In this document: positions 20,784-63,443 of the stretch, piece by piece | Numbering within the stretch: position 1 is the stretch's first letter | Layout: each line of letters starts with the position of its first letter | Assembly: GCA_047495785.1 (NCBI GenBank) | Contig: JBLDXI010000025.1 | Location: forward strand, 1,240,001-1,304,000 | Direction of reading: 5' to 3' | DNA length: 64,000 nucleotides | Source: Lepidodermella squamata | Lineage: Eukaryota; Animalia; Gastrotricha | Notes under the pieces: generated by a model | Database searches by the model: none | Seen by the model: the letters and a program-made list of their open reading frames with translations, nothing else | What the model was told of the DNA's origin: nothing | Made by a program: the position numbers and the translations under genes

Positions 20784-20786
20784 CGA

Positions 20787-37468: not shown

Positions 37469-37889
37469 CCCTGTTAATGCGACGCACTGAAATTCACAGC
37501 AGGTTGCTCTCGACCGATCTGTCGGCCCCTGAAGCCGATCGCCTGTCGTCAGCCGTCTCCTAAACTTTGAGGCTTTTTCTATTCTCCAATTTTAACATAA
37601 AATTTGTATGCATACGGAAGAAGTAAAATTAAACTTCATTTCGGTCATTTGGTCATTTGGCTTAAAATGCGCAGCTATCATCATTATTTTGTGATTAATA
37701 CTTATCACTAAACATTAGGTTTTCCCGTGAAAAATTGGCCATATCGACATGAACGAGCAATTAGTCTAAACTTCTGCTATGGGAGGGAGCTGAGCTTTAA
37801 AACGTAGGGGTATTTGAAGCCCGTGGGTGTGTTTGAGATGAAGAAAAGCAGGAGAAACCGTGCGCATTTCTTATCTTCCTAAGTTAATC

Positions 37890-44795: not shown

Positions 44796-45270
44796 ATGAT
44801 GAAATCAAGTCAGAGCTTACTTTTAGCACCAGCTTTGCTCAATCGCTCAGAAGCCATATAACTTGACTGTTACGTCAATGTTCCCATTCACTGGAGTAGC
44901 TTTGAGTTTCCGAATAACGTGCCTTTGAAGCCGTCGTTGGGCATTTCAACAAACGCCGCGACATGTTAGGAGACTACAACATTATCCTGCAAACAGCAGA
45001 TGAATCCAACGGCATCTTGAATCTCATGCAAATTGCAAATTATGCTCGTTCAATGGAAGAGACTTCATTTTCATTTCCATCTCGGCCAGTTTTAGGCGAT
45101 GGATTTTCCTCGTGTGTAATTAGGGGCGCCCCCTTGCTGAAACCCCTTAATCTAATCCAAATATGCTATGCATGTACTGCACCGGCTTTGGCGGACCATA
45201 TTCGTTACCCAAACCTCTGGTTGCCAATGGCCGCCGGAGATGTTCTAGCCATGGTAATTGTCCAATTCAC
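44796..45270 (+). pseudogene. 5' fragment of a class C GPCR paralog (37890-type)
   Basis: QKPYNLTVTSMFPFTG then frameshifts; ADESNG...YPNLWLPMAAGDVLAMVIVQF, then homology ends. Confidence 0.85.
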
Positions 45271-45631
45271 TCCGTTCTCTATGGAAAAATTCGGAACTTA
45301 CCATGATTTCCTCAAAATTATTTGGGCATATGATCATTATCACAAATCGCATAAATTTGGGTAATATGCATTCTTCACTATATTTTCAGACTTTCAGACT
45401 AGTTCAGTTTATTACGATAAGAAATGCCATGATGAGACAAACAACGCGCGCTGGCAAGCAATTTCGGCCATATCTAGTACTTTGAAAGACATCGATCAGG
45501 TCACGAAATGAGGGGTGAAATTTTGAAGCCTGTGCACGTAGCAAAACGAAACAGCCAATTATTTGAGTATACATATAGACACACGAAAACGATTTCGAAT
45601 GGAGTTAACAAAGATTGTTGTTCCTTTTTCA

Positions 45632-48013
45632 ATGAAATTCTGGTCGACTTTGATTGCATTCTCAAGCCTAGTCATGGCTTGCTGTGCCATCAAACCGTAC
45701 AATATGACCCTAATGCAAATTTTTCTGTTCTCAGGCATAACGCCTGGCTACGGAAACGTCTGCCGAGCTTCTGCCGAAATAGTCATCGATCTTGTGAATC
45801 GAAGAAACGACATTCTGCCAGATTATAACATCATCTCCGATTTCGAGGACGAAATGGTGGGGAAAAACGTAGCTCGATTGGTTGCAATGTATTCTCAATC
45901 AGTTCTCGACTCGGCAGGTCCGATGTATTACTCTCCTCTGATTCTTGGCAGTGCCATGTCTTCCGGGGTCGCTAGAAGTGCCCCGCTTTTCAAACCGCTC
46001 AATTTAATTCAAATGTGCTACTCCTGTAGTGCTGCTTACCTAGCAGACCATTTAAAATATCCCAATCTGTGGCTCACATGGTCGACTGGGGATCTTTCAG
46101 CAATGTCTATTGTTACATTTATTGCCAAAGTCGGAAACTGGAAACGTATCGGGATTCTCACGTCTCCGTTGAATTCCTACGACTACTCCACGGCTACTTG
46201 GATTCTGAAAATCGCCATGGAGGCCAAAATAGAAGTTCCTGTATTCAATATTCGGCTTGAATTTGACGAAGAATCTGTAGCGCCGTTTCTAGATCACGAT
46301 TTGAGAATACTTTCTGTCGCGAATACGCATACGGAGGACGTTTGGAAGTTTTACTGTATGGCTTACAAGAAAGGAATACGGGGACCGAAATATGTCTTTT
46401 TCCTTGACTCAGTCAGCTACCTAGAGGCTAAACTTCTCCCCGAAGAAATAATTCCAGGCTGTCATAAGAGCGTCGTGATTGAACAATATCAAAACGTTAT
46501 CTGGTTTTCATCGGCCCTACAAAATCTCGATCCGACCCAGAAATCTGAGCTCGGCTACGATTCGGTAGAATTCGACCGAATGCTTGATCGCTACATGTCC
46601 GATCGAAACATCTCGAAATCGCAAGACTATGCTGGATTCAGAACAACATGCCACGACACGACTCTCAAAGGCATAATTTCCTTACATAATGCTGATAAAA
46701 AACTTCAGAAATTAGGAATGTCGCTGAGAGACTATAGGAATTATTCAGAAATCGTCGCAAAAGTGGTGAACGATTCTGTTGCGACATCGAGAGTGGCTGG
46801 AATCCGAATCGGGCCTATGCAGTACAGCGACAGAGGACAGGTTGATGACGATCAGTTGGTTGTTATGTATCTGGATCCGAAGAAGGGATTGCTGAATCAC
46901 TACGCTCTAAAACGCTTCCGAAACTCCACAACATTCAGCGTTGAATCCTTCTATTTTGATAAGCTGGTGCCATTCAAATGGGTGGCTTGGAATGGGGTCC
47001 CTCGAGATTCTATGATTTTCACGGCTATAACTGCTGACGTTAGTTTATCTGGCCTCATAGCGATCGCGATCATTTGTTCCCTAGTTGCCCTGATTGATGT
47101 ATTGGGACTGATCTTCATTTGCTTGAGACATTCAGCATTATGCTGTGCTTTACCGATTTCCAAGGCCATAGGATTGATTGCTTGTATTCTCATAAATATT
47201 ACAGCGATCCTTAACGCTGCTGGAAATGATTCAAAACCTCTGACCTTTTCAAATCTAAGGATAGTTTTCATCGTTATCGGCTTGAGTCTGTTTAACGGGT
47301 CGATCGGACTTCGATCAATGTCACCATCTCGAATTTTCGAAATTGCCCACAGTTCTCCAACGCAAAAGACCAGGTACAAACTTACGGCAACTGCAAGCCA
47401 TGCTAAGGGCCAAGTAACTCTGCAACAGCTCAAATATGTCGATTTATTCATTGCTAAAGCCACCCTCAGTTTAGCTTTGATTTTTGTAGTCATCGTCATA
47501 ATTTGGTTAACTAGCGATCCACTCCTATGTAAAACGGAAGTAATGGGAGGAGTTCCGGTTTATCAGTCAACTTCGGACACATTTCTGAAAACTTTCGTAA
47601 CGAGCTGCGCATCTTCAAATCATACTATTTGGGCATCTGTGCTGATCTTCGTCAATTTGATCTTCTTAATTGTAGCCGCGATTTCTTATTACCAGTTTAA
47701 GCAAAGAAAGCTTAACATCCCAGCCCTAGACAGCTTGATTGATATCCCAATCAATCTTATGATATCGATATCGGTATATTTGGCTGCTGCCCTAATTATT
47801 CTGATCTTGAGAGATCCTATCAGTCAGCGGCTTGTTATTGCTATTGCATGCCTGATCTTATCAGCGGCTTCAACTGCTGCATGGCTGATTCCTCATTTTT
47901 CAAGTATCGATTTAAGCGAAAATTCCCCGATGGACATTATCGTGATTAGCAAGGTTCGAAATGACCACTCAAAGTTCTCAGAGTTGGGGGGTGACGGGAA
48001 ACATTCGACATGA
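45632..48013 (+). CDS. Class C GPCR, GABA-B-like, single exon
   Basis: ORF 45563-48013; probable ATG 45632 (MKFWSTLIAF); family motifs and 7TM. Confidence 0.9.
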   Translation: MKFWSTLIAFSSLVMACCAIKPYNMTLMQIFLFSGITPGYGNVCRASAEIVIDLVNRRNDILPDYNIISDFEDEMVGKNVARLVAMYSQSVLDSAGPMYYSPLILGSAMSSGVARSAPLFKPLNLIQMCYSCSAAYLADHLKYPNLWLTWSTGDLSAMSIVTFIAKVGNWKRIGILTSPLNSYDYSTATWILKIAMEAKIEVPVFNIRLEFDEESVAPFLDHDLRILSVANTHTEDVWKFYCMAYKKGIRGPKYVFFLDSVSYLEAKLLPEEIIPGCHKSVVIEQYQNVIWFSSALQNLDPTQKSELGYDSVEFDRMLDRYMSDRNISKSQDYAGFRTTCHDTTLKGIISLHNADKKLQKLGMSLRDYRNYSEIVAKVVNDSVATSRVAGIRIGPMQYSDRGQVDDDQLVVMYLDPKKGLLNHYALKRFRNSTTFSVESFYFDKLVPFKWVAWNGVPRDSMIFTAITADVSLSGLIAIAIICSLVALIDVLGLIFICLRHSALCCALPISKAIGLIACILINITAILNAAGNDSKPLTFSNLRIVFIVIGLSLFNGSIGLRSMSPSRIFEIAHSSPTQKTRYKLTATASHAKGQVTLQQLKYVDLFIAKATLSLALIFVVIVIIWLTSDPLLCKTEVMGGVPVYQSTSDTFLKTFVTSCASSNHTIWASVLIFVNLIFLIVAAISYYQFKQRKLNIPALDSLIDIPINLMISISVYLAAALIILILRDPISQRLVIAIACLILSAASTAAWLIPHFSSIDLSENSPMDIIVISKVRNDHSKFSELGGDGKHST

Positions 48014-48060: not shown

Positions 48061-48636
48061 CTAATTATTAGCTTTGTCAGCTTGCTGGCACACGTTCTTG
48101 TAAAAATTCGCATCTGCCGCAATTTTCCTTAGCAATTTGACGAGATTGCGATGCTGACGATAAAACTCAGCATCGGGCGGGGGCTGGGCATTGCGCATTC
48201 CAAGCGTCACATTACCGATGATTGCTTGCCACCGCCTCGAAGCGACCTCCTCCGCTGGATTTCGCCCTAACGCTAATGACGCCGAGTACTGCAGAAGATT
48301 GGCTTTCACGCAAAGAGCAGATTGAATTTTACGGCAGTTCTTAACGAGCCCAGACGAAGCGAATGACATATAGAACGTGACGTTATCGTGTTGCTGTTGA
48401 TGTTGATCGTCGCAAAATCGGGTTCGTAAAATGTGCCCTGTCATCAGGGCAACAATTTTGTCCTGCACTCTGTTATGTTTCTTCGTAACCTTATGGTGCG
48501 CTCGTTCAACATAATGCTGGTAATCTCGGGTTTGACCAACTGCATTCACTGGAACTAGTTCTATCTCTACAAAAGTTAACTTAGCGCTTGCTAATTCGCT
48601 AAAGATGAATGCTGAAATTATAAAATGGAAATACAT
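48061..48636 (-). CDS. Small secreted 4-Cys family member 1 (subgroup A)
   Basis: Signal peptide; LRTRFC...CRKIQSALCVKA...ADANFYKNVC. Confidence 0.85.
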   Translation of the reverse strand: MYFHFIISAFIFSELASAKLTFVEIELVPVNAVGQTRDYQHYVERAHHKVTKKHNRVQDKIVALMTGHILRTRFCDDQHQQQHDNVTFYMSFASSGLVKNCRKIQSALCVKANLLQYSASLALGRNPAEEVASRRWQAIIGNVTLGMRNAQPPPDAEFYRQHRNLVKLLRKIAADANFYKNVCQQADKANN

Positions 48637-48672
48637 TTTTTTGGAAAAATGACTAGTTTATTAGCTCGACTG

Positions 48673-49212
48673 TCACTGATTGTTTGCTTGTTGACACACA
48701 AGTCGGAATAAACGAGCGTCATTTACGAGATTGCGCCACAATTTGATGAGGTTGCTCCTGTTTTTGCCGGCGTCATTTGCGGCCTTAATTGACTCGCGCG
48801 ATGCAAAATAGTGCAGGACATTCGACTTCATGCAGAGGGCATCTCGCTTCTGGCTGCATCGTCGGTTAAGCTCGGACGCCGCCAAATTAGCCGGGACGAA
48901 AGCTTTTTCCAGTTTCAGGTCGCAGAACTTGCCGCGGAAGTAGGCGGCGCTGAGGATGACCGTTCTGACGTTTGCATCTTCCTTTGCAGTAGCCAGGTCT
49001 TGCTCCGGCAGAGTGCACGGTGACTCTTGACTAGATTCCTTATTTTCAGCAACCATTGGAGTTGCGAGTTTGTTTTCGATAAGTTCTCGACCCATGTCGC
49101 CCGCCACTTTCTCCAGCTCTCCAAACCGTAATTTCTCAGGGGCTTCATTTGCGGAACAACTCGCCAGCAGAAGATGGCAGACAGTTAGTAGCTTTATTAG
49201 ACCTTTTCGCAT
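48673..49212 (-). CDS. Small secreted 4-Cys family member 2 (A)
   Basis: Signal peptide; AAYFRGKFC...CSQKRDALCMKS...NDARLFRLVC. Confidence 0.85.
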   Translation of the reverse strand: MRKGLIKLLTVCHLLLASCSANEAPEKLRFGELEKVAGDMGRELIENKLATPMVAENKESSQESPCTLPEQDLATAKEDANVRTVILSAAYFRGKFCDLKLEKAFVPANLAASELNRRCSQKRDALCMKSNVLHYFASRESIKAANDAGKNRSNLIKLWRNLVNDARLFRLVCQQANNQ

Positions 49213-51488
49213 TTTGTATAATTTGAAAGAATAAGAACGAAATAACGAATAAGAGTCAAAGCAGAGCCTTATGAACGCAACAGACGTCCGCTTTCAAATT
49301 ACACTGCGATCTCTCACCGCACAATATGATGAAGCCTCCTACTCAATCAATTTGCTTAAAAATGATGTTTAGTTTGGGCGCTTTTATTCGGTACAGTTGG
49401 ACACCGATACATCAGCGGAGATGAGAATCGAGAAGAAGGATTACGATTCTAGGCATTGGAGGAGGCGGGTTTTATGAAACCACAGATATTTTTAGTTCTA
49501 GCGTAAATTTAAAATTGCGCATTTCCAAATCCCAATTGGAAGCCCCATCGGGTTGCGCAATAGTAAGAACTAGTGGACCTGTGTCACAAATTTGTAATGT
49601 TTATCGAAAACGCTAAAAATACTATGCTCCCACGATATCTGCAAGGGGGCGTTATCCACGCGGTTTCAATTTTCGAGAACTGTGGTTATGTAGAGGGCGG
49701 TAAAAGACCTCAAGTGCATCACTGCTGGGACGACGATGTTGTACTGGTTAGCTATTTCTGGTTTAACCTAAAATGGCTGAATGAGAATTTAGCTAACTTG
49801 TATATATTATCGCTGACATTTATCACTTTTCAATGATGCCATCAAAGTAGTTTCGATTTTGAGAAAAGCCTTCGACATGTAATTTCCTTCTGACGTGGAG
49901 CTTTATTCTACCAATTCCACGGGCAATTTTCAAGATTTGAAGGTATTTCTGTTTTTTTTTTACCTTAAAGGAGCATACCGTATTTTACGAATTATAAGAC
50001 CCTGCCCTGTATTTTTTCAAACGGGGTTCAAGTCCTGCTCTGTAATTAGGGTCTGCCCTTTAATTTTTCGAGCCTAATCAGTTACCTGAAGATTACCTAG
50101 ATCAACAGTTAAAACTAAAACCGCCGAATAGCCACTATAGCTACTGTCTTCCACCTGTGACTACATGCGTGAGGTGTTTGCTCAAGTGAATTAAGGTGGA
50201 TAAAGGACGATTAGCGCACTGAAGAAAAATCGCAACCATTCCAACTTCAACCAGTTGCCCAGCAGGCGCTTATGCAAGCCGCGTCATACAAGGCCCTGCC
50301 TATTAATACGGTTCTGTCCTTTATTATTTCAAATGGCCGTTACCCTCTGCTCCAGCATTTTTGAGACTCCAGCACAAGATTTCCCTTAAATATGTCTTCT
50401 TTGAAATCTCAATGTTTTGTTATAATGCCTAGCCAATAGATCTACAAATTTCGTGTATTTTCCGCTATGAGCGATCAGATAATGAGGTACCTTCAGCCAG
50501 CAGAGCCGATATCCACAATCCATGTATCGATCTCACAAATCAGTGGTTTTTCCGATACCTGCAGTCGTGGAAGCCAACATCGCTAATTGTCCTGCGAAGT
50601 TTGGGCGCCAGGTAGCTAAAATAACAAATGCTAGGTTCAGGGAGGGCATCAGCATCGATCGAAAAATGAAAACGCCGAAAATTAATACTCGTTTTTAGTG
50701 GTGCAATTGTTTGGATTCCAAAAAGAAATTTCACGATAGTTTTTTATCTAGCACATGACTTCTTTCATCCTGTAAAATGAATAATTTCACCGATGAATGA
50801 AAATACGATAAAAAATAACCTGAAACTGAATTGCAATCTCGCTGCGAGGAATAACATCAGTTTGGGAGCGGCTTCCATTTCTCCATTTCTCAAGTATCAT
50901 TGAAGTCTATGTAGATGGCGAATATATTTCGCCCTATGCATGTTTCCTGAGCCTTTTTCGACTGGGACCTACTTTTAAAAGTCGCCTCAAAGATTTAAGA
51001 CAGATCGTTTGTATTACATTTTTGTTTTTAAATCAATCTTTCAATCAATTTCGGGATTTGAATTAGTTTGTATTGTCCGACTGAAAGAAAAACACTTCGT
51101 CGTCTCCTATCCTCCTATGTTAACCTTATAAATCCCCTAGTTTTTCAAGCGATATATTTTTGATAAGCTGACATTATACTCCGCATCGAAATATGATCTT
51201 TGGGATAGGTGCGAGCCATGCGAGTACAGATTTAGAAATGTTGAGTGGAATATACAAATCAGCCCGCTCCCCAGCTTAAATTATCAGGATTAAATTTTCG
51301 CCATTTAGTACCACCAACTTAGAGCAGGAAAAATGTATAGTTGTAGTTTGTATAGATTCTATATTGCATTTTCTATATTGCAATTAAACACTATGTATGT
51401 AGGTATCTAGAGTAATTTGGATGCTATTCCTATCGATGAAAGGATTAAAGAGCGAAGCCTCGGGCGGCTGAACATCATTTTTATTCGA

Positions 51489-51878
51489 TCATAGAAGGCA
51501 CAATTCATTGAAAAGCTTCCAATCAGAACGGAATGTATCTTCCAATCTAAGTAACTCCTTCGCTTGTTTCTTCTGCATTGCTGCAAAATGCATGATGGAG
51601 GCTTTCGCACACATCATGGATCGAAAATTGAAGCAGATGCTCGATCGATTGATAGCGCTTCCATATTTCTGCATACAGTTTTTCAACCTGAATTCATTCG
51701 CGACAATCTGAGCAGAATTTTTCTCGGGGGCGTTGTAAGTTGAATCACTAAGCGTTTTGATCGACTCGGGAGGGTAGCCATCGCCTACTGCAGCTTGAGT
51801 GAACCCAACGAGAAATTTCAACAAAAAGGCTGAAACAATGAGAGGAGACCAAGTGGAAGCATTGTTAAACTTAGTCAT
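51489..51878 (-). CDS. Small secreted 4-Cys family member 3 (A)
   Basis: Probable ATG 51878; signal peptide; ANEFRLKNC...CFNFRSMMCAKA...SDWKLFNELC. Confidence 0.8.
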   Translation of the reverse strand: MTKFNNASTWSPLIVSAFLLKFLVGFTQAAVGDGYPPESIKTLSDSTYNAPEKNSAQIVANEFRLKNCMQKYGSAINRSSICFNFRSMMCAKASIMHFAAMQKKQAKELLRLEDTFRSDWKLFNELCLL

Positions 51879-52081
51879 AGTTCGAATATATACAGGAAAT
51901 TGCGCCAACCTATTTTTCAGTTTGGGACTGAGGAAGCCTCTTGACTGCCTCTGAATCAATATTTTCGTGCGAGTAAATGAGGTCATCTAGTTATTTTTGA
52001 GGCATATACACTTTATTATACCAGTTACGCCAAAAACAACACAGAAAAACAGCGAAATTAGGCCACAATAAAACACGTGGC

Positions 52082-52681
52082 CTACCTATTTGCATATCCA
52101 CAAACACTTGAGTAGAAAAGCGCGTCATTGATTACATTTTGCAGCAGTTTATCCACGTAGTTTGCGTCGACATTTTTTATCAAATGGCTTTTCTTGCTGG
52201 GGTCTAGAAAGATGGCCGCCTTTTGGCAGAGGATTTTCCGCCTCATTGAGCAATCAGAAACTAGTTTTTTGGTCCTAGTAGGCTGTCCATAGTCTGCGCA
52301 TAGCTGGCTGATAAGGTAGGCCCCAGTGCCGTATCCAAAATCATCGTTCTCTTCTTCATCATCTGCTTCGTAGCTCAAATCCACTTGTTTCGTAGTCGCG
52401 GTTACATGCTTAACTTGTGTGACGGCAGTTTCATTGATATGAGGGTGCTTAGTCGTCGAGTTTTGGTGATAAAATTCGACTGTAGCATTGTGAGCAATTC
52501 CATTAAATGCTGTGCTGACAACTCGAGCTAGTACTCCGAAGAAAATTCCGAAAAATACGAAAAATGATACTACAAAAATAACAGTAGCAGGGTGGTTGCA
52601 AATTTTTAGAAGTTGCTGCTTTGGCCCTGACTTTTCTCGAGTTATCCGCTTGATAACAGTGCCTTTTCTATTCAGAACCAT
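52082..52681 (-). CDS. 4-Cys family member 4 (A), type II membrane-anchored form
   Basis: Basic N-terminus, internal TM (VIFVVSFFVFFGIFFGVLA), Thr-rich stalk with N-glycosylation sequons, acidic patch, then LC...CSMRRKILCQKA...NDALFYSSVC. Confidence 0.8.
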   Translation of the reverse strand: MVLNRKGTVIKRITREKSGPKQQLLKICNHPATVIFVVSFFVFFGIFFGVLARVVSTAFNGIAHNATVEFYHQNSTTKHPHINETAVTQVKHVTATTKQVDLSYEADDEEENDDFGYGTGAYLISQLCADYGQPTRTKKLVSDCSMRRKILCQKAAIFLDPSKKSHLIKNVDANYVDKLLQNVINDALFYSSVCGYANR

Positions 52682-52883
52682 GATTTTTCGACGAAAATAT
52701 TCATAAGGACAAATACGGTCAGTAGTATCACCTCATGTGACGCGAAAACAGGTCATTGTTTACTCAGATCTCACCCGCTGAGAGTGATGCTCCCTGATTT
52801 TTATTTGTGTAATGCAAGCGGGAAGTTTATTCAATGAATTCGAATTAAAAATGAATAAATTCATGTGCGGCTGCGTCTGTTTT

Positions 52884-53321
52884 TCACGCCCGGCGGCCGC
52901 ATACGTTGTCGTAGTACAACGTGTCGGCGGCTAAATCCGTAGTAAGAGTCGTTAGCGCATTCGACTTCGTTGGACCACCTGCGCTCGCCGCTTTCGATGC
53001 TGTGAAGTAGAGAATAGTTGCCTTAGCGCAGATGAGACTGCGAATTTTCTGGCATCGACCTGCAAGTGACGGCGCTAGCATCATCGAAGGACCGCTGTTG
53101 TCCTGATTAGCCGATGGAGTGATCCCGCGGCAAAAAGTAGCTCGATAGTGATCGGCCGCTTGCATAGCTGCAACTTGGCGCTGCTGGCGCATTGAAGGCT
53201 GAATTATGGCATCCGAGGGATCGGCCAAATCTCTCAGCGTTTCCTCCTGCTCAAAAAGGCTGCATTTGACGCATTGAGCAGCGAGGATAGAAACAAGCAG
53301 AAAATTGATGAAAAATCGCAT
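52884..53321 (-). CDS. Small secreted 4-Cys family member 5 (A)
   Basis: ATG 53321 signal peptide; RQQR site; AADHYRATFC...CQKIRSLICAKA...ADTLYYDNVCGRRA. Confidence 0.87.
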   Translation of the reverse strand: MRFFINFLLVSILAAQCVKCSLFEQEETLRDLADPSDAIIQPSMRQQRQVAAMQAADHYRATFCRGITPSANQDNSGPSMMLAPSLAGRCQKIRSLICAKATILYFTASKAASAGGPTKSNALTTLTTDLAADTLYYDNVCGRRA

Positions 53322-53868
53322 CTTACAAGCTAAAATGTACAAAATGTGACTGAGTGCGGTGTAAAGGTATTGTGGGATCTTGATTAAAATTTTCCATTTA
53401 TCAAGGAATGTTAGGTGCAGATTTTCACAAACAGTAAGGAATGGCGAGGTGTTATATTCCCGCTTTCAACTGAAGTGACATTTCTTGTAGGAACTGCAAG
53501 GCTTTGTGACATTTATCAGCTATTCTTGGAATAAAATGAGAGATAGCCATAGTTACCAGCGTTAGTCGTTATGAATATTTAAAATAATTATGGCATGCTT
53601 TTGATCCGGATGAATGACGATTCCGAAGAAAATAGCGGAAAAACAAACGTTTTTTGAATTAATCGCGTTTTTTATCTCTCACAACGCGTGATTATCCTAA
53701 GAGATACGTCATTAGCCTTAAGAATACGCGAGGGAGGCTGAACCTATAGGGACGTTTTGCAAAACAAGTCTCGAGTTTCAATAAAATCTTTTATTTGAGG
53801 GACCTTGCAGAGAGTCCTTCTTTATGTGATAGGTATAAAGAACAAGAACTAAGTAAATGTGTTAAAAA

Positions 53869-54480
53869 CTAAAATCGCCCGCAAACATTGGCATAGTATA
53901 ACACATCTGCGACAAAATTTTCAAGTAGCCGATCGATTTCGGCCTGCCGTGGCATTAGTGGAACGTTTTTGCCCATTGTTGTCGTCACGTAGGTGTTACT
54001 TGACAGTCCATTACGCGCGTAATGCAGAATGGTTGCCTTAGCGCAGACGAGTCGCTTAATCTTTTGACACCGCAGAGCTAAACTCGGTCCAAGCATCATC
54101 GATGCAGAAGACACCATCGCTGATGGGTTGGCTGCTGAGCTGCAGTGCCGTTGGCGGAATGATTCAGCGTCTCGAAAAGCTGATTCTCGCAATTGTTCGT
54201 TCATACTGATGGTTGGAAGTGGTTCTTCCACCTTGTTGCTGTTGTAGTTTGATCTTGCCCGATGCGGCGCCCTCTTAGTCGGCATAACTTTGTCTCCGTA
54301 TATCATTGGAGGGTTGTAGCCCTTACCATAACTTTCCAGTCTTTTGCCCACAACATTTGCGACGGTCGGATTTAGAAAATAGGCAGAGCTAGGCACCTTT
54401 TCACCGGATCTTCTCAATGCAGCAGAACCGTGGAAGAAGAGGACGACGAATAAAACTAACAGCTCGACTTTGATGAACAT
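53869..54480 (-). CDS. Small secreted 4-Cys family member 6 (A)
   Basis: Signal peptide; AESFRQRHC...CQKIKRLVCAKA...ADVLYYANVCGRF; shares SMMLxPSLAxRCQKI with member 5. Confidence 0.87.
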   Translation of the reverse strand: MFIKVELLVLFVVLFFHGSAALRRSGEKVPSSAYFLNPTVANVVGKRLESYGKGYNPPMIYGDKVMPTKRAPHRARSNYNSNKVEEPLPTISMNEQLRESAFRDAESFRQRHCSSAANPSAMVSSASMMLGPSLALRCQKIKRLVCAKATILHYARNGLSSNTYVTTTMGKNVPLMPRQAEIDRLLENFVADVLYYANVCGRF

Positions 54481-56697
54481 TTCGAAAAATCACCAAATAC
54501 CTAGAATCATTGAGTAAAAAAGTTGAGCTTTATGGCGGTTCGAACCCTTGATTTTGGCGAGGTGGACAGTAGGTGGTAAAATCCAGGGGTTGCAATTACT
54601 ACAACAAACCGTAGTATGACCACGCACACAATTTTCGCACTTAGCGTAGGCATCGATAGTGGAGCCGATAAAGGCATTGTGTTTGATGTTATTTTTTCAT
54701 TAATATTTGTTGTGGCAGACAAAGCGTGGGAACATCAGTGCATGCGCGGCAATGTATCTTCTAATACATCAATCACAATCAAATGGAATTGTTTCGGTTT
54801 CCTGCCGGAGCTCAAGATGGTCAGAAAGAGAAAGACATTTAGAATGTTCAAAAGCAATGAAACATGTTGGGGAACAACACTATTCTGGTGAGCTTATTAA
54901 CTCAGTGACAGAAAATTCAGCTAATTTATACATATCATGTGACGACGTGATCGCATCGAAATATACCGCGGTCAAGTGTGTGGTCAAGGGTAACGAGAGG
55001 GAGGTGACCGTGAGTTCATTATACACATTCCTCCCTCCAGCCAGGATATGTCGAGCGGACATATTTCCTTGTTGATTAGTTTACGATCTCTATAAAACAT
55101 GAGCTAAGACTAACTATTTCTTCAACCGCTCAAGGTAGGCGGTACCATAACTGCAGTTCACTATTTCATGGGATATGACGGAATTAGAGGAAAAGCGCTT
55201 AATACCCAAGAATTTTAATGGTTGCGCTGCATCTTAGGAATTAAAGTAATGTATTATACCCCTTACAAGGGAATTAGACTAGCAATGTGCGACGGTGGTT
55301 ATAGGGATGGGGACAAAGGTGAACTGATACCAGCGGACCCGGTCTACAACCTTTAAAGATTGATAGCGCCTAAGGGATAGAAGAGACTGGCAGGAATGGC
55401 TAGAAGCTAGAAGTCAAGAAAAATGCCGAAGTAAAGTCAAGAAGATCTTATAACCGAAGAAATAATAAGGGAAAGAGCAGACGGATCCCGTAACAAACCC
55501 CGTCCATATGGAAGCAACATATCCGATATTTCTGAAAAAACTGTCAATTGGACATTGACCGAAACAATATTGCTTCAACTAGATGATTTTATAGTAACAG
55601 CAAGATATTCTCGGCTGTGTGGGTGGGTAAAATGTTGGGTTTGCCTTGCCTACGACTTCCTCAAGACCCAAAAGGATACGGACGATAAGTCGAAGGGTGG
55701 AGAACTTTCAATCTCAATTTCAAATAAAAATCAGTCGCATACTGCATGTTGCCTACGTTAAAAATAAAGCCCACGCCTATCATGGAAGGTAAACTTTCTA
55801 TCAATTTCAGCTTTCTACCTCTGGGTTAGTCCGGTTTAGTGTTTACAGTTTGCAGCATCCCTGGACGGTTTGACATAATTCACCATTTGACGCAATTTTT
55901 TATTACTTTTTTGATGAAATTCGCCTACGTATTGCATGACAAGGTCGAAAGTTTTATTTAATTTCGCTGTTGATCTTTGCAATGCGTTCTAAGGTCGAAG
56001 AGCTCTTATTGTCTTTACCTAGGCCATCTAGAATCATGATTCAAAGTCGGGCTTATATTCAAGGCCGAAAAATATGCAAAGGGAAGTTAAGTCCAATATG
56101 AAGTCCAAGTACAGACAAGCGCATGGTAAAAACTGAAATTTGTTGATTTCGCTCAAAAGAAAAGTTCGTATTTTGGTAAGTTTAACGGATAAGCCTTCCA
56201 GGGCTATTCACTATTCACTCTATTATTATTTGTTTTATAGATTTAACAACTTTCTGACATATCTTCACTCAAGCTTTTGCCAAATAATACAGTGTGTCCA
56301 ACATTTTTGCAACATTATAAATTGCGCTGCCATTCGCTCATTTTGGCAAATTTTTCCATGGTTGAACATGATTTCGAAAGCACTAATCGCTAAGTTTATG
56401 TGGTTAAAAGGATTTTGACGTTTCAAAATGCCGATGCGCCAAATTCGCGAATGGCAGCAATTATAATGTTACACAACTTTTTGGATACACTGTACTTGTA
56501 TGATTTATTAATAAAATATTTGCGGTTTTTTGCAATTTTACGTGAATCTTCTAGTAGAGATGGAGAAAATAGGAAGGTCGAAACGTTGAAATAGATGTTT
56601 CAAACATGTTGCTTGATGCCAACACGGGCACCGACGATTTGTCCAATCACTTCAACGTTCGATAGGTCGTTCTGAACACGTGAAAAAGCTGTTCTCA

Positions 56698-57785
56698 TTA
56701 TTCGTTCGTATTCATATTCTCGTAGGACGTTTTTTGGGCTCGTCGGATGGAAAATCTGTGAATATTATGTAAAATTGCAATTATGTAATTTTGGGACAGA
56801 AAATCTTACATTAGAAACGCAATAACTAGTACGGCCACAAAAAGCAGTGCCCCCAGAACGCCGCCCACAATCGCAGCATCGTCGCTTCCAGAGGCGTCTT
56901 TGCGAGCGCACGAAGAGCTATTCGCCAGAATGTGATCCATGCGATCAGCATCGTTGCACATGGATCCGCAGCATGTGCATGTTTTGAAGTAGTCTCCATT
57001 TTCTGCTGTGAAGGTTACCGAGGCTCCACATGGCTTTTGCAGGGTGCTCGCACAGCCCCAGTAGTAGGTGTGGTCCTTCCCATCAAATTTTGACGACTTC
57101 TAATTAAGGAAACTGTTTTCGTTAAAAGCTTATCGATTATCGGAATTCTCACGTGGCAAGATTGCGTTTTAGTGCAAGGAACAGGAACTGCATCCGGGGG
57201 GAGGTAAGGATCGTTTACAGTGTTCTGAGTATCAAAAATTGATTTTGGAAATTTCTGTTTCAAGCGGCGCTTACATCCATCCTCCCAGCAGTGTAACAGG
57301 TCTTATCGTACTCAGGCTGGCCATTACACGTGGCATCTAATTCATGGCCGTTACACATCTCACCACAACACGAACAGAAACGGTAATAGATCGAAATATT
57401 TGCGCCGTAAAACTGACCGCCATACGTGTCCTCGAAGGTGGATCCACACTTCCACATGCGATTGAAGGTCCCAATAGGACTATTGTCGTCTACACAGCCC
57501 CACTGATAGCCTAAAGTCGTTGTAACTATCGGGGAAGTTTCGTTGGCAGAATAAATTGTCTCTAGGTACGCTTTCTGAATGAAAGAAACACCAATTTATG
57601 TTGTTGATTATGTGATAAATAATGATTACATAACACTTCGCATCAGCCGTAGCGTTGCAAATGATAGGCTGGGCATTTTCGGGTAAAGAAGTTCCGTCAA
57701 GCGTTTGTGTTTCAGCGCTGTAACATGTCAAAGCATCCGTCCAGCCTAGCCCTAAAAGAAAGATGATCCCATGGAAGATGTGCAT
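56698..57785 (-). CDS. Type I membrane protein with two three-finger/LU-like domains and a TSYENM tail; exons 57785-57630, 57574-57275, 57224-57153, 57099-56810, 56755-56698
   Basis: Four 50-55-bp GT-AG introns keep frame; each domain begins TCY and ends CxCCGxMCN; TM AIVGGVLGALLFVAVLVIAFLIFSI, then RRAQKTSYENMNTNE. Confidence 0.8.
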
Positions 57786-57892
57786 CGTGTTAAATGTACG
57801 TAAGTGAAAACTTTGCTCGTTCTAATTTCAACTGATAACGCTTATCTCGCACATTTTTATTTCTTCAAAAGAACCCCAGCAATCTCTAATAA

Positions 57893-58273
57893 TCAGCAAT
57901 ACGTTTGATATTCCTCTGCGTATTCAACAAACGAGTTGACAAGCTGTTTGTATTCCTCAATCGGCATGATTTCCTGAGGTTTGTTCGCGGCAACGCTTGC
58001 CATAGCTTGGAGAGACGCCTTTGTGATCTGACCAGCTCTTTTGCAGGCTCCTCTCAGCGAATTTTCGTAACGAGCCAATCGGCTCAAAACTCCAGCTGCC
58101 AAAGCTACATTGCTGCTAGGGCCCGATGTCATATCTCCGCAATAGCGGAGTCGAAAAGCTGCTGCTACAACACTCGGAGGGGCTGTAGATCTCACCGTTC
58201 TGTCATACTCCGCCGATTTGCCGCAGCAAATGAAGACGAAAAAAGTCGTTAAAAATAAAACAGCGAGAGCCAT
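57893..58273 (-). CDS. Small secreted family member 7 (subgroup B; lacks Cys2)
   Basis: ATG 58273 signal peptide; RTVR; AAAFRLRYC...YENSLRGAC...FVEYAEEYQTYC. Confidence 0.82.
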   Translation of the reverse strand: MALAVLFLTTFFVFICCGKSAEYDRTVRSTAPPSVVAAAFRLRYCGDMTSGPSSNVALAAGVLSRLARYENSLRGACKRAGQITKASLQAMASVAANKPQEIMPIEEYKQLVNSFVEYAEEYQTYC

Positions 58274-58544
58274 TTTATTGAATGAATTGTGAAAAGCTTG
58301 AAGAATCCGGAGTGAAAATTTGCAGAATCCTGTGGGATGCTTTAAAAAATGCAAAGTTCTTCGATCAAAGACCTTACTACGCCTTTCCTAGGGCTTGTTT
58401 AATTACGACAAAAAACCAAGGAAATCCGTTTACTCCTGCGTAAGGGAAAAGCACAGGCTTAAGACAAGGGATATGAAAATCAATTATATATACAAAAAGC
58501 GCTTCGGGCAAATTTTGTATTGTATATAAACGCACAAAGTTAGC

Positions 58545-58969
58545 CTAGTGACTTTTCATACTACGGCATTGATTATGGTAATACTCTGATAATCCATTGA
58601 ATTTTGAGATCGTTTTTTCTGCAGCGGGATCTTCAGGTTTAGATGCGCTCAGTGAACTTGCTGTTTCGCACGCAAGCTTTTGAAGTTGTCCGCAGCTCTA
58701 TCCAAGCTGTCAATGAAGGACGGAGTAGCGTCAACTCTAGCTCGGTTGTAGATATTCGCTGTCCCACCGAATCGCAGCACGTTTCGATATTCAGGCTTGA
58801 TTAGATCAAGACAATATCGCAGCTCGAAAGCCGCAGCTCTGATCGCATCAATGTTGACAGGTTTTCGTGAACTCTTTACGAAGTTAACTTCGTCTTGACA
58901 GCTAGTCATAACAAAAACTAAGACCAGAGTTAGAGAATGACCTAAATCCATGGTTAAAAATTCTTGCAT
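58545..58969 (-). pseudogene. Frameshifted family member 8 (B)
   Basis: AAAFELRYC...LDRA in one frame; after a shift near 58695 a second frame reads CGQLQKLACETA...FNGLSEYYHNQCRSMKSH-stop. Confidence 0.75.
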
Positions 58970-59101
58970 TGAAGCTTTACGGATTCGAATAAGTGCCTTA
59001 AATAACTTTGCGCCCCGGCATGCAAAGACGCAATTATAGACTTAAATTCAGATTTTTTATTTTCATAGACATAAAGCCTACGCAAAATCGTTATTTTTCT
59101 A

Positions 59102-59527
59102 CTAATGTTGATGCAGAGACAAGGCGCGGCATTGCCTGCGATACCAGATCGCTGTGGAGGCGAAAGCCTCGATCAGGCTTTGATATGTCGTAGCAGAAAC
59201 TTGCTGCTTCGGGGTAGTCAGCACTTTTGACGCAGCCATGCATGCTGATTTCATCCAGTTGGCACAACGCACATGCAAAACGCTGTCCCCTAGGGACGCG
59301 AAATTACTCGTTGTCCGCGGCGAGCCGTCCCTATCTACGCAATATCGCAGCTCGAACGCACCGGCGACGATGACAGGCGACGGCGTTTTCACGCGCTGAT
59401 GAATCTCAGACGGTTTGTGGCGGTTTGAGATCAAACGCAGCATTTGTTCGAATGCAGCTTCTTGGTTGACAGCTGCCATTGCGCAGCCCAGTGTAGCGAG
59501 AAAAGCGATGATTTCGAACAATTTCAT
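59102..59527 (-). CDS. Small secreted 4-Cys family member 9 (B)
   Basis: ATG 59527; AGAFELRYC...CANWMKSAC...FASTAIWYRRQC. Confidence 0.87.
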   Translation of the reverse strand: MKLFEIIAFLATLGCAMAAVNQEAAFEQMLRLISNRHKPSEIHQRVKTPSPVIVAGAFELRYCVDRDGSPRTTSNFASLGDSVLHVRCANWMKSACMAASKVLTTPKQQVSATTYQSLIEAFASTAIWYRRQCRALSLHQH

Positions 59528-59871
59528 TATATAACAGGAAATCAAATAAAGCGAATGTTGTTTACTCCGACAGCTGTGTATCAGTCGCTCATTAGATTAG
59601 TTTTATCGGCGCTGAAATTCAATTAGGGAGACTTTTTTAAGGGGCGTGGCTGCGCTCAATTACTCGTCATGAAACCTCATCTGGTACGCAGCGAAATTAC
59701 GTAGGCAGGCTTCTGCGATGTCCACTTCAAAGTTTTCGCTGGTCACTTGTATAATAGATGAATGCTGAAATCATAATTCATAAATATTTACACAAATGTA
59801 AGGATTCAACGCCCACATTTTTCGTTTATTTTTGTAAGATAATATGTACTATAAATATTTGCACTAATCGA

Positions 59872-60291
59872 TCACTCATGTCCCCCGACGTGCCTACACT
59901 GCCGTCTGTACCAGATGGCGCTGCGCGCGAAATTTTGAATCAGCGATTTAAAGTTATCCGACGTAGGGGCGGTGAGTTTTGACGAGTTTTGTAATATGGC
60001 ATCAGATGACGCGCAAACGACACGTAAGATTTCATTGCATCGTGCATAGCGCTGAACGTTTCTCATGAAATTCGGCGATAGGATCTTGATGTGGTCATCG
60101 CTTGGACTTTTCGAACAGAATCGAAGCTTGAACGCTCCAGCTGCGATGATCGGCGAGGGCGTGCCGGGGGATACTGAAGAACCAACCGGTCCAGCGAGTC
60201 GCTGAAAAACCGCCTCGAAAGCTTGCTCCTTGTAACTTTTCGCCTCGACCGAAATAGCGGCCGTGAAAAATAGGAGAAGAAATAATTTCAT
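59872..60291 (-). CDS. Small secreted 4-Cys family member 10 (B)
   Basis: Signal peptide; AGAFKLRFC...CNEILRVVC...FARSAIWYRRQC. Confidence 0.87.
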   Translation of the reverse strand: MKLFLLLFFTAAISVEAKSYKEQAFEAVFQRLAGPVGSSVSPGTPSPIIAAGAFKLRFCSKSPSDDHIKILSPNFMRNVQRYARCNEILRVVCASSDAILQNSSKLTAPTSDNFKSLIQNFARSAIWYRRQCRHVGGHE

Positions 60292-60706
60292 AATAATTAC
60301 TCTGGATGTTTAGCTAAAATTCAGCGTATAGGACTGGCGTGTTGTATCGCAGCTCTCGAGGGAAGAATTTCGTCGGGTCAGCTGCGTAATCGGGTGAATC
60401 AGAGTCCTTGATACGCGCGTACTGCTGGCCGTATTCGTCAATAGCGGCGCGACTCGTTTATCACCATAGCGATCGACCGCGGACAGTAAATATATCACTA
60501 GTATGACAACAAGCCGTGACCAATTATGGTAATTTGATAAGCAATAGATAAGCAATACTATATCTGATAAATGTATACCGCCGAAAAAAAATTATTGCTC
60601 GCCACTAGTGTGGCAGCTCATTACCCCGTTTGTCATCGCGTAGCCCCATCCACGTCAAATTAAAACTAAATTCAATAACTTCAGTCCATTTTATTTCGGA
60701 ACAATA

Positions 60707-61165
60707 TTAATAAAAAACACCCTCAAACTTTTTAGATGCGACAATTTTCTTCGTCTGACAATGACGCTGATGCCACATCGCATATAGCGTGAATGCGTCC
60801 AATATCGACTTATATCGGACTTTGTTATTAGCCCTCAGCAGCGACGCCCCTTTGCGGCCACTTGCCATCACTTGGTCAGCTTTCGAGCAGGCGGTTTTAA
60901 GAACACGCTGGCACTTCATCTCTGCGTCGAGATTGTTGAAATCAATCGCCCCAAGCTTCGAATCATTCGTATGAAGAGCGTTTGCGCGCTTGGCTTGAAT
61001 AGGACAGTGTTGTTGTCTGAATTTCCCAGCAAAGGTGACAGCAACTTCCTGTCGTGAAATTGAAGCTGACGTAGCGATTTGCAAAACAAACGCTAAAAAT
61101 ATTAGAGGAATAGCAAATCTCATGATGAAGGCAAAAACTGCGGAAATGATTGAAACGGTGACCAT
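60707..61165 (-). CDS. Small secreted 4-Cys family member 11 (B)
   Basis: Start 61165 or 61123; AGKFRQQHC...CQRVLKTAC...FTLYAMWHQRHC. Confidence 0.85.
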   Translation of the reverse strand: MVTVSIISAVFAFIMRFAIPLIFLAFVLQIATSASISRQEVAVTFAGKFRQQHCPIQAKRANALHTNDSKLGAIDFNNLDAEMKCQRVLKTACSKADQVMASGRKGASLLRANNKVRYKSILDAFTLYAMWHQRHCQTKKIVASKKFEGVFY

Positions 61166-61252
61166 GCCTTCACTACCCCACGCAAAACCTCAAGAGATTG
61201 ACATATATCAGAACATTTTATTTAGCAATCAGAGTGATGCAATAATCATCGA

Positions 61253-61714
61253 TCAATCGCGCTCTTGGCCTATAATGTGTTGACAGTTTTCACGTAGCCA
61301 AATTGCTTTCTCTGCGAATAGCTCCAGAAGTTGCTTGTAGGCGGTGATATTCAGCAGCCAATTGCTGTTAACCGGTGCCGTGACGATGCGATTTGCGTCG
61401 GCGCAAGTTGAGCTGGTTAAACGATAGCATTGAATTGCTCGCTCCAGGGCGCTGAAAAATATTGGCGAGCTTGTTCGTTGTTGTTCTTCAATTATTTGAC
61501 CGGCCTTGCTGCAGTAGCGCTGTTTGTACGAATAAGCGGCGACTACAACACTGGGCAGCTTGACAGTGCTCTCGCCCTTTGAATGGGGAGTGTTAGGGCT
61601 TGGTGGTACATCAACTGGGGCGAACAGTGATTCGACCGTTTCAAATTCAGCCGCGGCGGAAGCGATAAAAATCGCCTTCAGCATTAGTATAGAAATTCCG
61701 ATGCTAGCAGTCAT
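61253..61714 (-). CDS. Small secreted 4-Cys family member 12 (B)
   Basis: ATG 61714; AYSYKQRYC...CYRLTSSTC...FAEKAIWLRENC. Confidence 0.85.
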   Translation of the reverse strand: MTASIGISILMLKAIFIASAAAEFETVESLFAPVDVPPSPNTPHSKGESTVKLPSVVVAAYSYKQRYCSKAGQIIEEQQRTSSPIFFSALERAIQCYRLTSSTCADANRIVTAPVNSNWLLNITAYKQLLELFAEKAIWLRENCQHIIGQERD

Positions 61715-62127
61715 TTCCACTGAAAATAATGACCAAACATGCGCTTGAGGGTGAGCTCAACCGTAGGCTGGGTTGGTGAACGTGGTGGAACGTGACATTT
61801 TCGGGAAATATCTCCATTTAATTGCCAACTACTGACCAGATCAACAGATCTGATGCCATGCTTAGAACAGGTTTTTTGAGTGCATATCCAATTACATCAC
61901 GAGGAGTAGGCTGGACAAATTCTACAGAAAAATGAATTTTCGGAAGTCTCGGACTTTTTTGAACAGGAAACAACCCACATCAAGGCTCGGTGTAGTACAT
62001 CTCGGACCACTCCATTAGCGAATCAGGTTTCTAGTACTAGTACTTGTCTGAAAATAGTTTATTTTTCCCAGCGCGAAAAAGTACAAAATTTCAACTGGAC
62101 GACATGAATTGAGAGAAAAACATGAAA

Positions 62128-62682
62128 TTAAATATTCTGGCAGTTGTCACGAAACCACAAAGCATTGTCAATAAAATTGACGACTCTGGTCTTGAATTGC
62201 TTTAAATTGACATTATTCGGCATTGAAAAGCCCCCTGAATCAGGCGATATTTGACTGGCAATATTGCAAACCGTCCGCAGAGTTCCGTAACACTGAACAA
62301 TTTTGTCGAGCATACTGAAGAAAATAGGCGCAATTTGCTGCTGTTTCGAATTTTCACTGTCAATCGAAATGTCATCAACTGATAACCGGCCGCAGTAATT
62401 TTTCTTGAACGCATGGGCAACGAAAACGATACCAGGGATAACTTTAGAATATCGTGATTTCTTGCCGCCAGTTAGGGCTTTAGTTACAGCGCTCGATATG
62501 ACTAACCGGCTGCGAAGTTGCGAAGTTGACTGCTTCCCAAAAACAGCTGATTCCAGCTTGGTGATGCCATTACTCAAACAAAAATCCGTGGACGAACTTT
62601 TGGAGCATTTTGAAGATTGCACGGCGTTAGCTGGTCGCCGCAGCAAGGTGAAAGAGAAAAAGACAAAGGGCAGGAAAATCAT
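62128..62682 (-). CDS. Small secreted 4-Cys family member 13 (B)
   Basis: AHAFKKNYC...CYGTLRTVC...FIDNALWFRDNC; extra Cys pair in the N-terminal region. Confidence 0.85.
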   Translation of the reverse strand: MIFLPFVFFSFTLLRRPANAVQSSKCSKSSSTDFCLSNGITKLESAVFGKQSTSQLRSRLVISSAVTKALTGGKKSRYSKVIPGIVFVAHAFKKNYCGRLSVDDISIDSENSKQQQIAPIFFSMLDKIVQCYGTLRTVCNIASQISPDSGGFSMPNNVNLKQFKTRVVNFIDNALWFRDNCQNI

Positions 62683-63029
62683 GTCACGTTTTGCGGTTTG
62701 AGGCTTAATCCCGTCCGAAGCGCGCCTTATCTCTCATTGTTTGAGGATAAGCTACTTTGTCAGATTATTAGTGATGTTTACGAATTTAATTTTAACCCGA
62801 ACCGGCAGCTTTATGCGGATATGTGCGAGCTAATTATAGCCTGGCGATCGGAAATCCTCGAGCATATCAGGCGCCCCCGTTCCGGCAAGCTACTACGCTA
62901 GTGCCTTTCATTAACCGAAATTTCGAGAAAATTTTGACTGACAAACCCGAAAGATCATGGCTAATAGAATCAGGAGGGGATTTATTTTGAAAAATACGGA
63001 AATCAACAGACAGAATAATCAGAGTTTAT

Positions 63030-63443
63030 TCACTGCTCCTGAAGACAATGTCCGCTGTACCATACAGCATTTGACGCGAATGAGTCTGCGAATAACCGAT
63101 TCGGCTTATTTTTAACGGCACTTCGCAAAAGTCCATCCGCACTGATGCAAGCTGTGTTGAGAGTTTTGTAGCATTGAACCGCTCGATCGAGTAGGCTTGA
63201 GAACAGTGACTTCATATTTCGAACCATATCAACGACTTCTCGCTCGTCCTTGCCAGAATTCGTGCAGAATTTCATCCGGAAAGAGTGAGCCATGAATATG
63301 GCGCCGGATAGTGACTTCGGGATAACTACAGGTGTTCTCAGGGTGTTAAGCGACATATCTAACAGATTCGGCTCGTCTTGCATCATAACGTTGCACAGAA
63401 CATCTGCCCATGTGAAGGCAGCTAGGAAAAGCGATGTCCTCAT
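63030..63443 (-). CDS. Small secreted 4-Cys family member 14 (B)
   Basis: Signal peptide; AHSFRMKFC...CYKTLNTAC...FASNAVWYSGHC. Confidence 0.85.
   Translation of the reverse strand: MRTSLFLAAFTWADVLCNVMMQDEPNLLDMSLNTLRTPVVIPKSLSGAIFMAHSFRMKFCTNSGKDEREVVDMVRNMKSLFSSLLDRAVQCYKTLNTACISADGLLRSAVKNKPNRLFADSFASNAVWYSGHCLQEQ

Follow-up and report, generated by a model that had tools for sequence, protein, structure and literature searches.

The window analysed here is a 64,000-nucleotide stretch of genomic DNA from Lepidodermella squamata, a gastrotrich (assembly GCA_047495785.1, contig JBLDXI010000025.1, positions 1,240,001 to 1,304,000; positions below are counted from the first letter of the window). 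Its minus strand carries, at 48.0–63.5 kb, a tandem array of genes for small secreted proteins with four conserved cysteines. By open reading frame (ORF) listing, alignment and motif mapping, the array (48061–63443) comprises 13 intact intronless ORFs of 137–203 amino acids and one frameshifted copy. An earlier note, made from the sequence alone, had described 14 co-oriented genes. The common orientation and the 14 units stand, but one unit is broken and nine more copies lie outside the window. We are confident that these genes form a real, expressed and constrained orphan family of secreted helical proteins.

The minus strand of the array region has 13 open frames that are 137 codons or longer and the plus strand has none; shuffled sequence yields 0.27 such frames on average and 3 at most. 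All 13 intact genes have the polyadenylation signal AATAAA 4–79 nucleotides past the stop codon, an arrangement expected by chance in ∼0.07 of cases per gene. No common 7-mer rises above background in the regions upstream of the family genes. A hidden Markov model (HMM) profile built from the 13 cores recovers each core at E = 1e-18 to 1e-31 in the 64-kb window, and matches nothing else there apart from two pieces of the broken unit.

Features shared by the encoded proteins

Every intact protein starts with a hydrophobic N-terminal stretch (12-residue Kyte–Doolittle hydropathy 1.8–3.1), and hydropathy analysis finds no further membrane-like segment in any intact window protein. A variable, low-complexity linker separates this signal from a core that holds four cysteines (C1 to C4) with the spacing C1-x(13–33)-C2-x7-C3-x(36–73)-C4, and the window proteins end 0–16 residues past C4. 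C1, C3 and C4 are invariant among all intact window members. C2 is kept by all except gene 57893 (genes are named by their first coordinate), which has Tyr96 in its place in the assembly. The N-terminal signal and four-cysteine core that had been described from the sequence are therefore real features of the family, C2 being absent only from that one assembled allele.

Our working definition of the family is a signal peptide, followed by A-x-x-F-[RK]-x-[RK]-x-C, C-x7-C-x-K-A and, near the C-terminus, F-x-x-D-x-x-x-[YF]-x-x-x-C, with a basic core of ∼90 residues. It describes the 13 window genes, nine others in the genome and three metagenome proteins. Outside the cysteines, the conserved sites are an A, an F or other aromatic residue and two basic residues in helix 1, the K-A pair after C3, and F, D and Y (or another aromatic) in helix 3. 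The cysteine, aromatic and A/K/D positions are retained over these 25 sequences at only ∼20% identity. Moreover, all 25 cores are basic, with isoelectric points of 8.4–10.3 and net charges of +2 to +16.

The C-terminal endings CGRR and CGRF that the earlier note had picked out are present, as CGRRA in gene 52884 and CGRF in gene 53869. Its RxxR or basic sites ahead of the core fared less well: RxxR-type sites are found there in a few members only, and pro-hormone-like processing is not common to the family. Three ORFs (51489, 57893 and 60707) have probable internal ATG starts.

Members of the array

The array is broken by gaps at 49.2–51.5 kb and 54.5–57.9 kb, and its genes fall by position into subgroups A and B. 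Subgroup A begins with a gene of 191 amino acids (48061..48636; E = 7e-27 against the family profile, AATAAA at +14) that has a signal peptide and a core with a long insertion separating helix 2 from helix 3. It is followed by one of 179 amino acids (48673..49212; E = 2e-23, AATAAA at +11). Past the first gap, the 165-residue ORF at 51489..51986 has the shortest core (E = 1.5e-18, AATAAA at +4); an internal ATG (Met37) is its likelier start, because the hydrophobic signal begins near residue 49. The gene at 52082..52681 (199 amino acids; E = 2.4e-18, AATAAA present) is the most divergent member, with a tree branch of 3.3. A long N-terminal stretch precedes its hydrophobic segment of ∼23 residues, so that this segment possibly serves as a type II signal anchor and is not cleaved off. 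Subgroup A ends with the gene encoding the CGRRA terminus (52884..53342; 152 amino acids, AATAAA present), whose core was modelled as a three-helix bundle, and the gene encoding CGRF (53869..54480; 203 amino acids, E = 1.6e-26, AATAAA present).

Subgroup B opens with a 153-residue ORF at 57893..58354 that probably starts at Met28, is covered by cDNA-like contigs and has its AATAAA. The next unit, at 58548..59041, is a pseudogene. Its profile matches are split over two frames (58652–59041 and 58548–58697): the signal, helix 1 and C1 are encoded in one frame, the frameshift falls directly after the residues LDRA, and C-x7-C and the terminal Y-x-x-x-C are still encoded in the downstream frame. 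The ORF at 59102..59545 (147 amino acids; first ATG at 59527, AATAAA present) is represented by one colinear cDNA-like contig. The gene at 59872..60291 (139 amino acids; E = 1e-31) is the best match to the family profile and was modelled at full length. A 152-residue ORF at 60707..61165 with a likely start at Met15 matches the profile, has AATAAA and is covered by a cDNA-like contig. Three further genes match the profile. The first, at 61253..61720 (155 amino acids), has a GTG start in the assembly and an ATG in another individual; the second, at 62128..62682 (184 amino acids), has nearly no coverage in the cDNA-like run; the third, at 63030..63443 (137 amino acids), is the final array member, and its cDNA-like contig extends further upstream. 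The next 10 kb past this gene hold no additional family copy.

Subgroup B is flanked by two copies of a small gene unrelated to the family, at ∼56806–57785 and ∼63817–64098, both on the minus strand; the first copy lies within the 54.5–57.9 kb gap. This gene apparently has several exons and encodes a signal peptide, a cysteine-rich ectodomain ending in CC-x-x-x-C-N, the Ly6/uPAR three-finger signature, and a single transmembrane segment.

Transcription

Two public runs contain the region, X1 (2015) and X2 (2024), and their read coverage was examined over subgroup B. The coverage of X2 is even (depth ∼63), which marks this run as genomic DNA from a different individual or strain. Run X1 is patchy. 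Its contigs lie on six of the seven intact subgroup-B genes (57893, 59102, 59872, 60707, 61253 and 63030) at a k-mer depth of ∼10–65, and several intergenic bins have zero depth.

One X1 contig of 539 nucleotides is gapless and colinear with 59054–59567, that is, with the whole 59102 gene and short untranslated regions. It then runs on into 23 letters (a loose end at 59567), the reverse complement of which contains AAGCAGTGGTATCAACGCA, a sequence that we take to be a SMART cDNA-amplification primer. The presence of this primer at the contig end implies that X1 is amplified cDNA and that the transcript of gene 59102 is intronless. One X1 record has a 23-nucleotide poly(A) loose end behind window position 59917 on the plus strand; for gene 59872–60291, which is on the minus strand, this is the wrong side. 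It could be the end of an antisense transcript, or an internal-priming or contig artefact.

Selection on the array genes

The same two runs reveal how the genes vary within the species. Among the differences listed between X1 or X2 and the seven intact subgroup-B genes, 17 are synonymous and 5 non-synonymous, although 77% of the sites are non-synonymous (binomial P = 1e-7); the ratio of the proportions of differing non-synonymous and synonymous sites (pN/pS) is ∼0.09. Subgroup-B variation within the species is thus under strongly purifying selection. Gene 61253 has many allelic differences, synonymous for the most part, and the change 61720 C>T converts its GTG start into ATG. In gene 57893, window position 58068 T>C replaces codon 96, TAC (Tyr) in the assembly, by TGC (Cys) in run X2, which restores C2 of the family; the assembled Tyr96 allele may be a hypomorph or decaying. 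Neither X1 nor X2 has an indel at the frameshift of 58548–59041, and we therefore regard this unit as a genuine pseudogene. It is the only broken copy among the 14 of the array.

Over longer distances the synonymous sites are saturated. This is true both between paralogues and between a second-cluster gene (see below) and its closest metagenome relative (pS 0.75–0.85, pN 0.28–0.50), and it makes the ratios of non-synonymous to synonymous substitution rates (dN/dS) of paralogues and orthologues uninformative. Because of this saturation, and because tree branches exceed one change per site, the copies are taken to be old and retained, and their low identity to reflect that age. Together with the low pN/pS and the single broken copy, these findings do not fit the rapid diversification that had been proposed for the array. 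Transcription and purifying selection, whose absence the earlier note would have counted against its proposal, were both found, the first in run X1 and the second in the polymorphisms.

Family size and relatives

We searched the genome (121.2 Mb in 151 contigs) with the family profile. The first profile gave five extra places, and an improved profile of 25 sequences gave 22 solid matches genome-wide, which are the intact copies. Six of them form a second cluster on the minus strand ∼400 kb from the array (C25:1695533–1702521), and three are singletons (C25:1714862 and C25:1352715, both on the minus strand, and C21:380054). With the broken copy counted, 22 of 23 copies lie on the minus strand of one contig (C25). 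Several second-cluster copies have no signal peptide in the same open frame; these probably have an upstream exon, and the family would therefore not be strictly intronless. A maximum-likelihood tree agrees with the two positional subgroups first noticed in the sequence: subgroup B (57.9–63.4 kb) is a clade with support 97/98, subgroup A holds together less firmly, and the copies of the second cluster make up a third group. The median terminal branch is near 1 change per site.

The family is lineage-restricted. A profile scan of 1.84 billion representative proteins yielded three true relatives (E about 1e-4), all of them metagenome proteins without a name, from eukaryote-like contigs of ∼37% GC that belong to other species. 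None of the three shows synteny with this genome; for one of them, P0003, the locus was compared with that of the C21 copy and no synteny was seen. A 3873-residue protein, P0001, reached a profile E of 2e-8 in the same work; we rejected it as an artefact, the sum of 14 weak matches in a discoidin-repeat protein. Scans of JGI metagenomes found no relatives.

Known families gave no match. In a Pfam scan of all 25 members, no family cut-off was reached and no weak match recurred across members; weak matches to Ectatomin, SUR7, Tweety and others were set aside, as each involved one member and fell below the cut-offs. The family profile matched no PDB sequence below E = 7, and an ESM Atlas feature search returned nothing usable. 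We found no description of the family in the literature, although these were word searches only and count as weak evidence.

Predicted structure

We modelled two members, the full 59872 protein and the 52884 core, by AlphaFold2 with the family alignment. The 59872 model has a predicted local distance difference test (pLDDT) score of 84 and a predicted template modelling (pTM) score of 0.72, with helices at residues 47–59, 75–101 and 112–132 and an additional N-terminal helix made of the signal peptide and a short amphipathic segment. The 52884 core model (pLDDT 85.7, pTM 0.74) has helices at 2–14, 37–64 and 71–95. Both models show an antiparallel up-down-up three-helix core, with C1 just past helix 1, C2 and C3 two turns apart within helix 2, and C4 near the end of helix 3.

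The models thus agree with the earlier suggestion of three helices, with two of the four cysteines, C2 and C3, predicted in helix 2. The cysteines are placed such that one disulfide could join helix 2 to helix 1 and another could join it to helix 3. The pairing suggested by the helix geometry would be C1–C3 and C2–C4, because an up-down-up bundle would set C4 opposite C2 and C1 nearer C3.

Fold searches give the modelled core no characterised relative. Foldseek against the PDB returned nothing below E = 0.5. An exhaustive structural aligner returned only generic helical bundles, the best being a de novo designed antiparallel three-helix bundle at Z 8.6, a value in the range rated uninformative for helical proteins. 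The ESM Atlas shape search gave unrelated bacterial helical proteins. Across the Pfam, PDB-sequence, fold, ESM Atlas and 1.84 billion-protein profile searches, then, no characterised family is matched, in line with the earlier note, which could not place the cysteine spacing among insulin, odorant-binding, chemosensory, saposin or CHH proteins.

Neighbouring genes and other features of the window

The first 48 kb of the window hold another tandem array (1105–48013), of about ten single-exon genes of ∼800 amino acids each, which encode very divergent GABA-B-like class C G-protein-coupled receptors (GPCRs). Examples, all on the plus strand, are 1105–3543, 6031–8457, 8957–11413, 11980–14325, 31053–33551, 34066–36471, 37860–40232 and 45563–48013; the array also includes a split copy (15418–17693) and a fragment (44963–45364). 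The best solved match of the receptor is a GABA-B receptor (PDB 9jr0, E = 4e-13, nearly full length), and the 45563 protein, the one tested, has no Pfam match at E ≤ 1. Genome-wide, first-look candidates of the receptor family number at least 1276, and contig C24 carries many of its arrays. The last receptor gene is convergent with gene 48061..48636, their stop codons 48 bp apart. By eye, three minus-strand ORFs (40731–42755, 43138–43710 and 24087–24827) are more divergent receptor-like frames; one of them, of 674 amino acids, has regions resembling a ligand-binding domain and a multi-pass membrane domain.

A near-identical duplicated minisatellite region with QDAANPEGSR and PDGNPQGLRH repeats involves 18385–19249, 20206–21396 and 22353–23657 (the last two on the minus strand). 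In the 20206–21396 ORF the repeat is fused to a C-terminal portion that is identical in the seven-transmembrane-like ORF 22353–23657. Either a segmental duplication of recent date or a chimeric assembly accounts for this; multiple displacement amplification was used for the published assembly. On the plus strand, the ORFs 27073–27531 and 29522–29926 are paralogous. Both have a Sushi/CCP-like stretch, then a linker rich in Ser and a cysteine-rich tail, and they are probably exons of duplicated secreted-protein genes.

In the genome as a whole, Wnt genes are present and there are more than 150 Cys-loop channel matches. A six-frame genome search found no match to innexin (PF00876), despite the protostome-like look of a genome with hundreds of Cys-loop channel genes; this absence may reflect the sensitivity of the first-look filter or a real loss. 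The Cys-loop channels led us to reject a sponge as the source, which the Wnt genes, the missing innexin match and the GABA-B-like expansion had at first suggested. Light-harvesting and silicon-transporter genes were looked for and are absent, so that a diatom or other alga was rejected too.

Possible function

What might these proteins do? We tentatively favour the view, inferred from the features described above, that they are basic, secreted ligands of three helices stapled by disulfides, every one retained for a particular partner outside the cell. Each gene is an independent, mostly intronless transcription unit, and its product consists of a signal peptide, then a variable linker and a basic ∼90-residue domain. 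The mature proteins would bind cell-surface partners outside the cell, as cytokines, hormones or pheromones do, and each old paralogue would be retained for a partner of its own. The conserved basic residues (the R of helix 1 and the K after C3) and the acidic D of helix 3 could form a common structural or contact site. The pattern is ligand-like in that the paralogues are old, individually conserved and little pseudogenised, and all members are basic. Chemokines and many growth factors are basic too.

Several points weigh against this proposal. The predicted fold is generic and gives no pointer to function, and antimicrobial or matrix-binding roles fit basic amphipathic helices equally well. 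The run on which transcription rests, X1, is tagged ‘RNA?’ and is not confirmed RNA, and the RNA check is limited to subgroup B. Moreover, 22 further difference sites lie beyond those listed in the polymorphism count.

The strongest competitor, although a good deal less probable than a ligand role, is that the proteins are cationic host-defence effectors, antimicrobial or microbiome-managing, whose basic amphipathic helices would attach to anionic microbial surfaces and disturb them. All 25 cores are basic, the proteins are small, secreted, helical and disulfide-stapled, and they belong to a tandem multigene family in a freshwater animal that feeds on bacteria. However, strong purifying selection, very old paralogues and low turnover are less typical of immune effectors, without excluding them, and no antimicrobial peptide or saposin family was matched in Pfam.

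Structural or secretory-matrix components, of mucus, cuticle, egg envelope or adhesive gland, come next and seem unlikely. Basic helical domains can bind anionic glycans or surfaces, and such a role would suit the uniformly basic cores, the variable low-complexity linkers and the moderate k-mer depth (∼10–65) in a whole-animal cDNA-like run. It sits poorly with domains that are compact and individually conserved and that lack repeats, Pro/Gly/Ser/Thr-rich stalks and cross-linking motifs.

It is somewhat less likely again that the proteins carry small hydrophobic or semiochemical molecules, as odorant-binding proteins (OBPs), chemosensory proteins (CSPs) or secretoglobins do, possibly in chemoreception. 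They are small, secreted, disulfide-stapled, all-helical and encoded in tandem, and next to their genes is a large array for class C receptors that are probably of chemoreceptor type. Yet a cavity would hardly fit into a three-helix bundle of ∼90 residues, the cysteine spacing is unlike that of OBPs or CSPs, no Pfam match was found, and the proteins are basic whereas OBPs are usually acidic.

The adjoining receptors suggest another, quite improbable, explanation: that the family supplies dedicated ligands or accessory subunits of these GABA-B-like receptors, in a co-localised ligand–receptor cluster comparable to mouse ESP/V2R. In its favour, 48 bp separate the start of the array from the end of the receptor array, and both families are lineage-specific expansions. 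But no receptor gene is present within ∼20 kb of the six-copy second cluster, family members are missing from the vicinity of the receptor arrays on other contigs (C2, C24 and others), and the family has no C-terminal membrane helix and so is not RAMP-like. With receptor genes so numerous (at least 1276 candidates), one adjacency among five loci is not surprising; we put its chance roughly at 20%. A profile–profile comparison found no relation between the family and the neighbouring receptors. Complex prediction for the receptor ectodomain (residues 43–490 of gene 45563) and the core of 52884 returned a score of 0.00, a ‘no answer’ result that counts neither way. In its most specific form, in which the array is the ligand half of such a cluster and encodes endogenous or conspecific ligands or soluble co-factors of the neighbouring GPCRs, the idea is slightly more doubtful still. 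If true, this would be an invertebrate counterpart of ESP–V2R and would provide the first protein ligands for one among the huge orphan class C expansions of small invertebrates.

That the frames are chance ORFs or dead repeat relics rather than genes, an idea that has only the lack of database relatives to recommend it, is hardly credible in view of the ORF statistics, polyadenylation signals, signal peptides, conserved cysteines, cDNA-like coverage and synonymous excess.

Whether ligands, as we favour, or effectors of another type, this is a new family but a familiar kind of protein; secreted, cysteine-stapled tandem families confined to one lineage are common in poorly sampled animals. To our knowledge, gastrotrichs have a single published genome, and next to nothing has been learned about the molecules that they secrete for signalling or defence. 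With its 22 intact genes the family is a well-defined target in the search for novel extracellular ligands, antimicrobial proteins or co-factors of chemoreception; the gastrotrichs are a phylum close to the flatworms. The position beside a class C receptor array is the one feature that could raise the importance of the family, and that link is weakly supported.

Comparison with known systems

The RAMP ectodomain is, like the predicted core, a small extracellular three-helix bundle held by disulfides; RAMPs are partners of GPCRs, including one class C receptor, and our array adjoins class C receptor genes. The two differ in several respects. The family has no C-terminal transmembrane helix (the best 19-residue hydropathy after residue 70 is ≤1.13) and a different cysteine pattern, and its 25 members have no Pfam RAMP match and no PDB-sequence match below E = 7. 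No RAMP chain was among the top 50 of Foldseek or VIA-align, although a fold as generic as the three-helix bundle may have weak matches that are not listed.

Insect CSPs (OS-D) and OBPs (PBP_GOBP) also come from tandem arrays and are small, secreted, all-helical and disulfide-stapled, and CSPs likewise have four cysteines. In CSPs, however, the disulfides join neighbouring cysteines (C-x6-C ... C-x2-C), whereas the family pattern is C ... C-x7-C ... C; three helices are predicted here rather than six, and there is no Pfam OS-D match. OBPs have six cysteines. The family has neither these nor the four of C-minus OBPs with C2-x3-C3, and there is no Pfam PBP_GOBP match.

Saposin-like proteins have six cysteines in three nested disulfides, compared with four conserved cysteines here; no member matches Pfam SapA or SapB, and no saposin is among the fold neighbours. 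Similarly, the six-cysteine signatures of insulin/relaxin and of the CHH/ITP hormones are absent from the family, which has no Pfam match to either.

Mouse ESPs, too, are a multigene family of small, secreted, helical, disulfide-containing proteins, with one disulfide each, and signal to an expanded class C GPCR family (V2R). They share no homology with the proteins described here, and the receptor link in this genome is a single genomic adjacency, not a systematic one.

Short-chain helical cytokines such as GM-CSF, and the Er pheromones of ciliates, are also small and secreted, and form bundles of helices held by two or three disulfides. GM-CSF even has the order C ... C-x7-C ... C, which we treat as a lead only. 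These cytokines have four helices arranged up-up-down-down, compared with three predicted here, where C2 and C3 lie within one helix. No Pfam, PDB-sequence or fold match to either group was found; the only cytokine-related neighbour listed was a designed granulopoietic protein at E about 1.

The closest parallel in mode of action would lie with ALKAL/augmentor (FAM150). Its domain, of ∼50 residues, is about half the size of the ∼90-residue family domain and has a different cysteine spacing; none of the 25 members has a FAM150 Pfam match at E ≤ 1, and there is no structural match. Nevertheless, ALKAL is basic and secreted, and its variable N-terminal region leads into a C-terminal domain of three helices with two disulfides. 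It offers the closest analogue for the working of a ligand made of three stapled helices.

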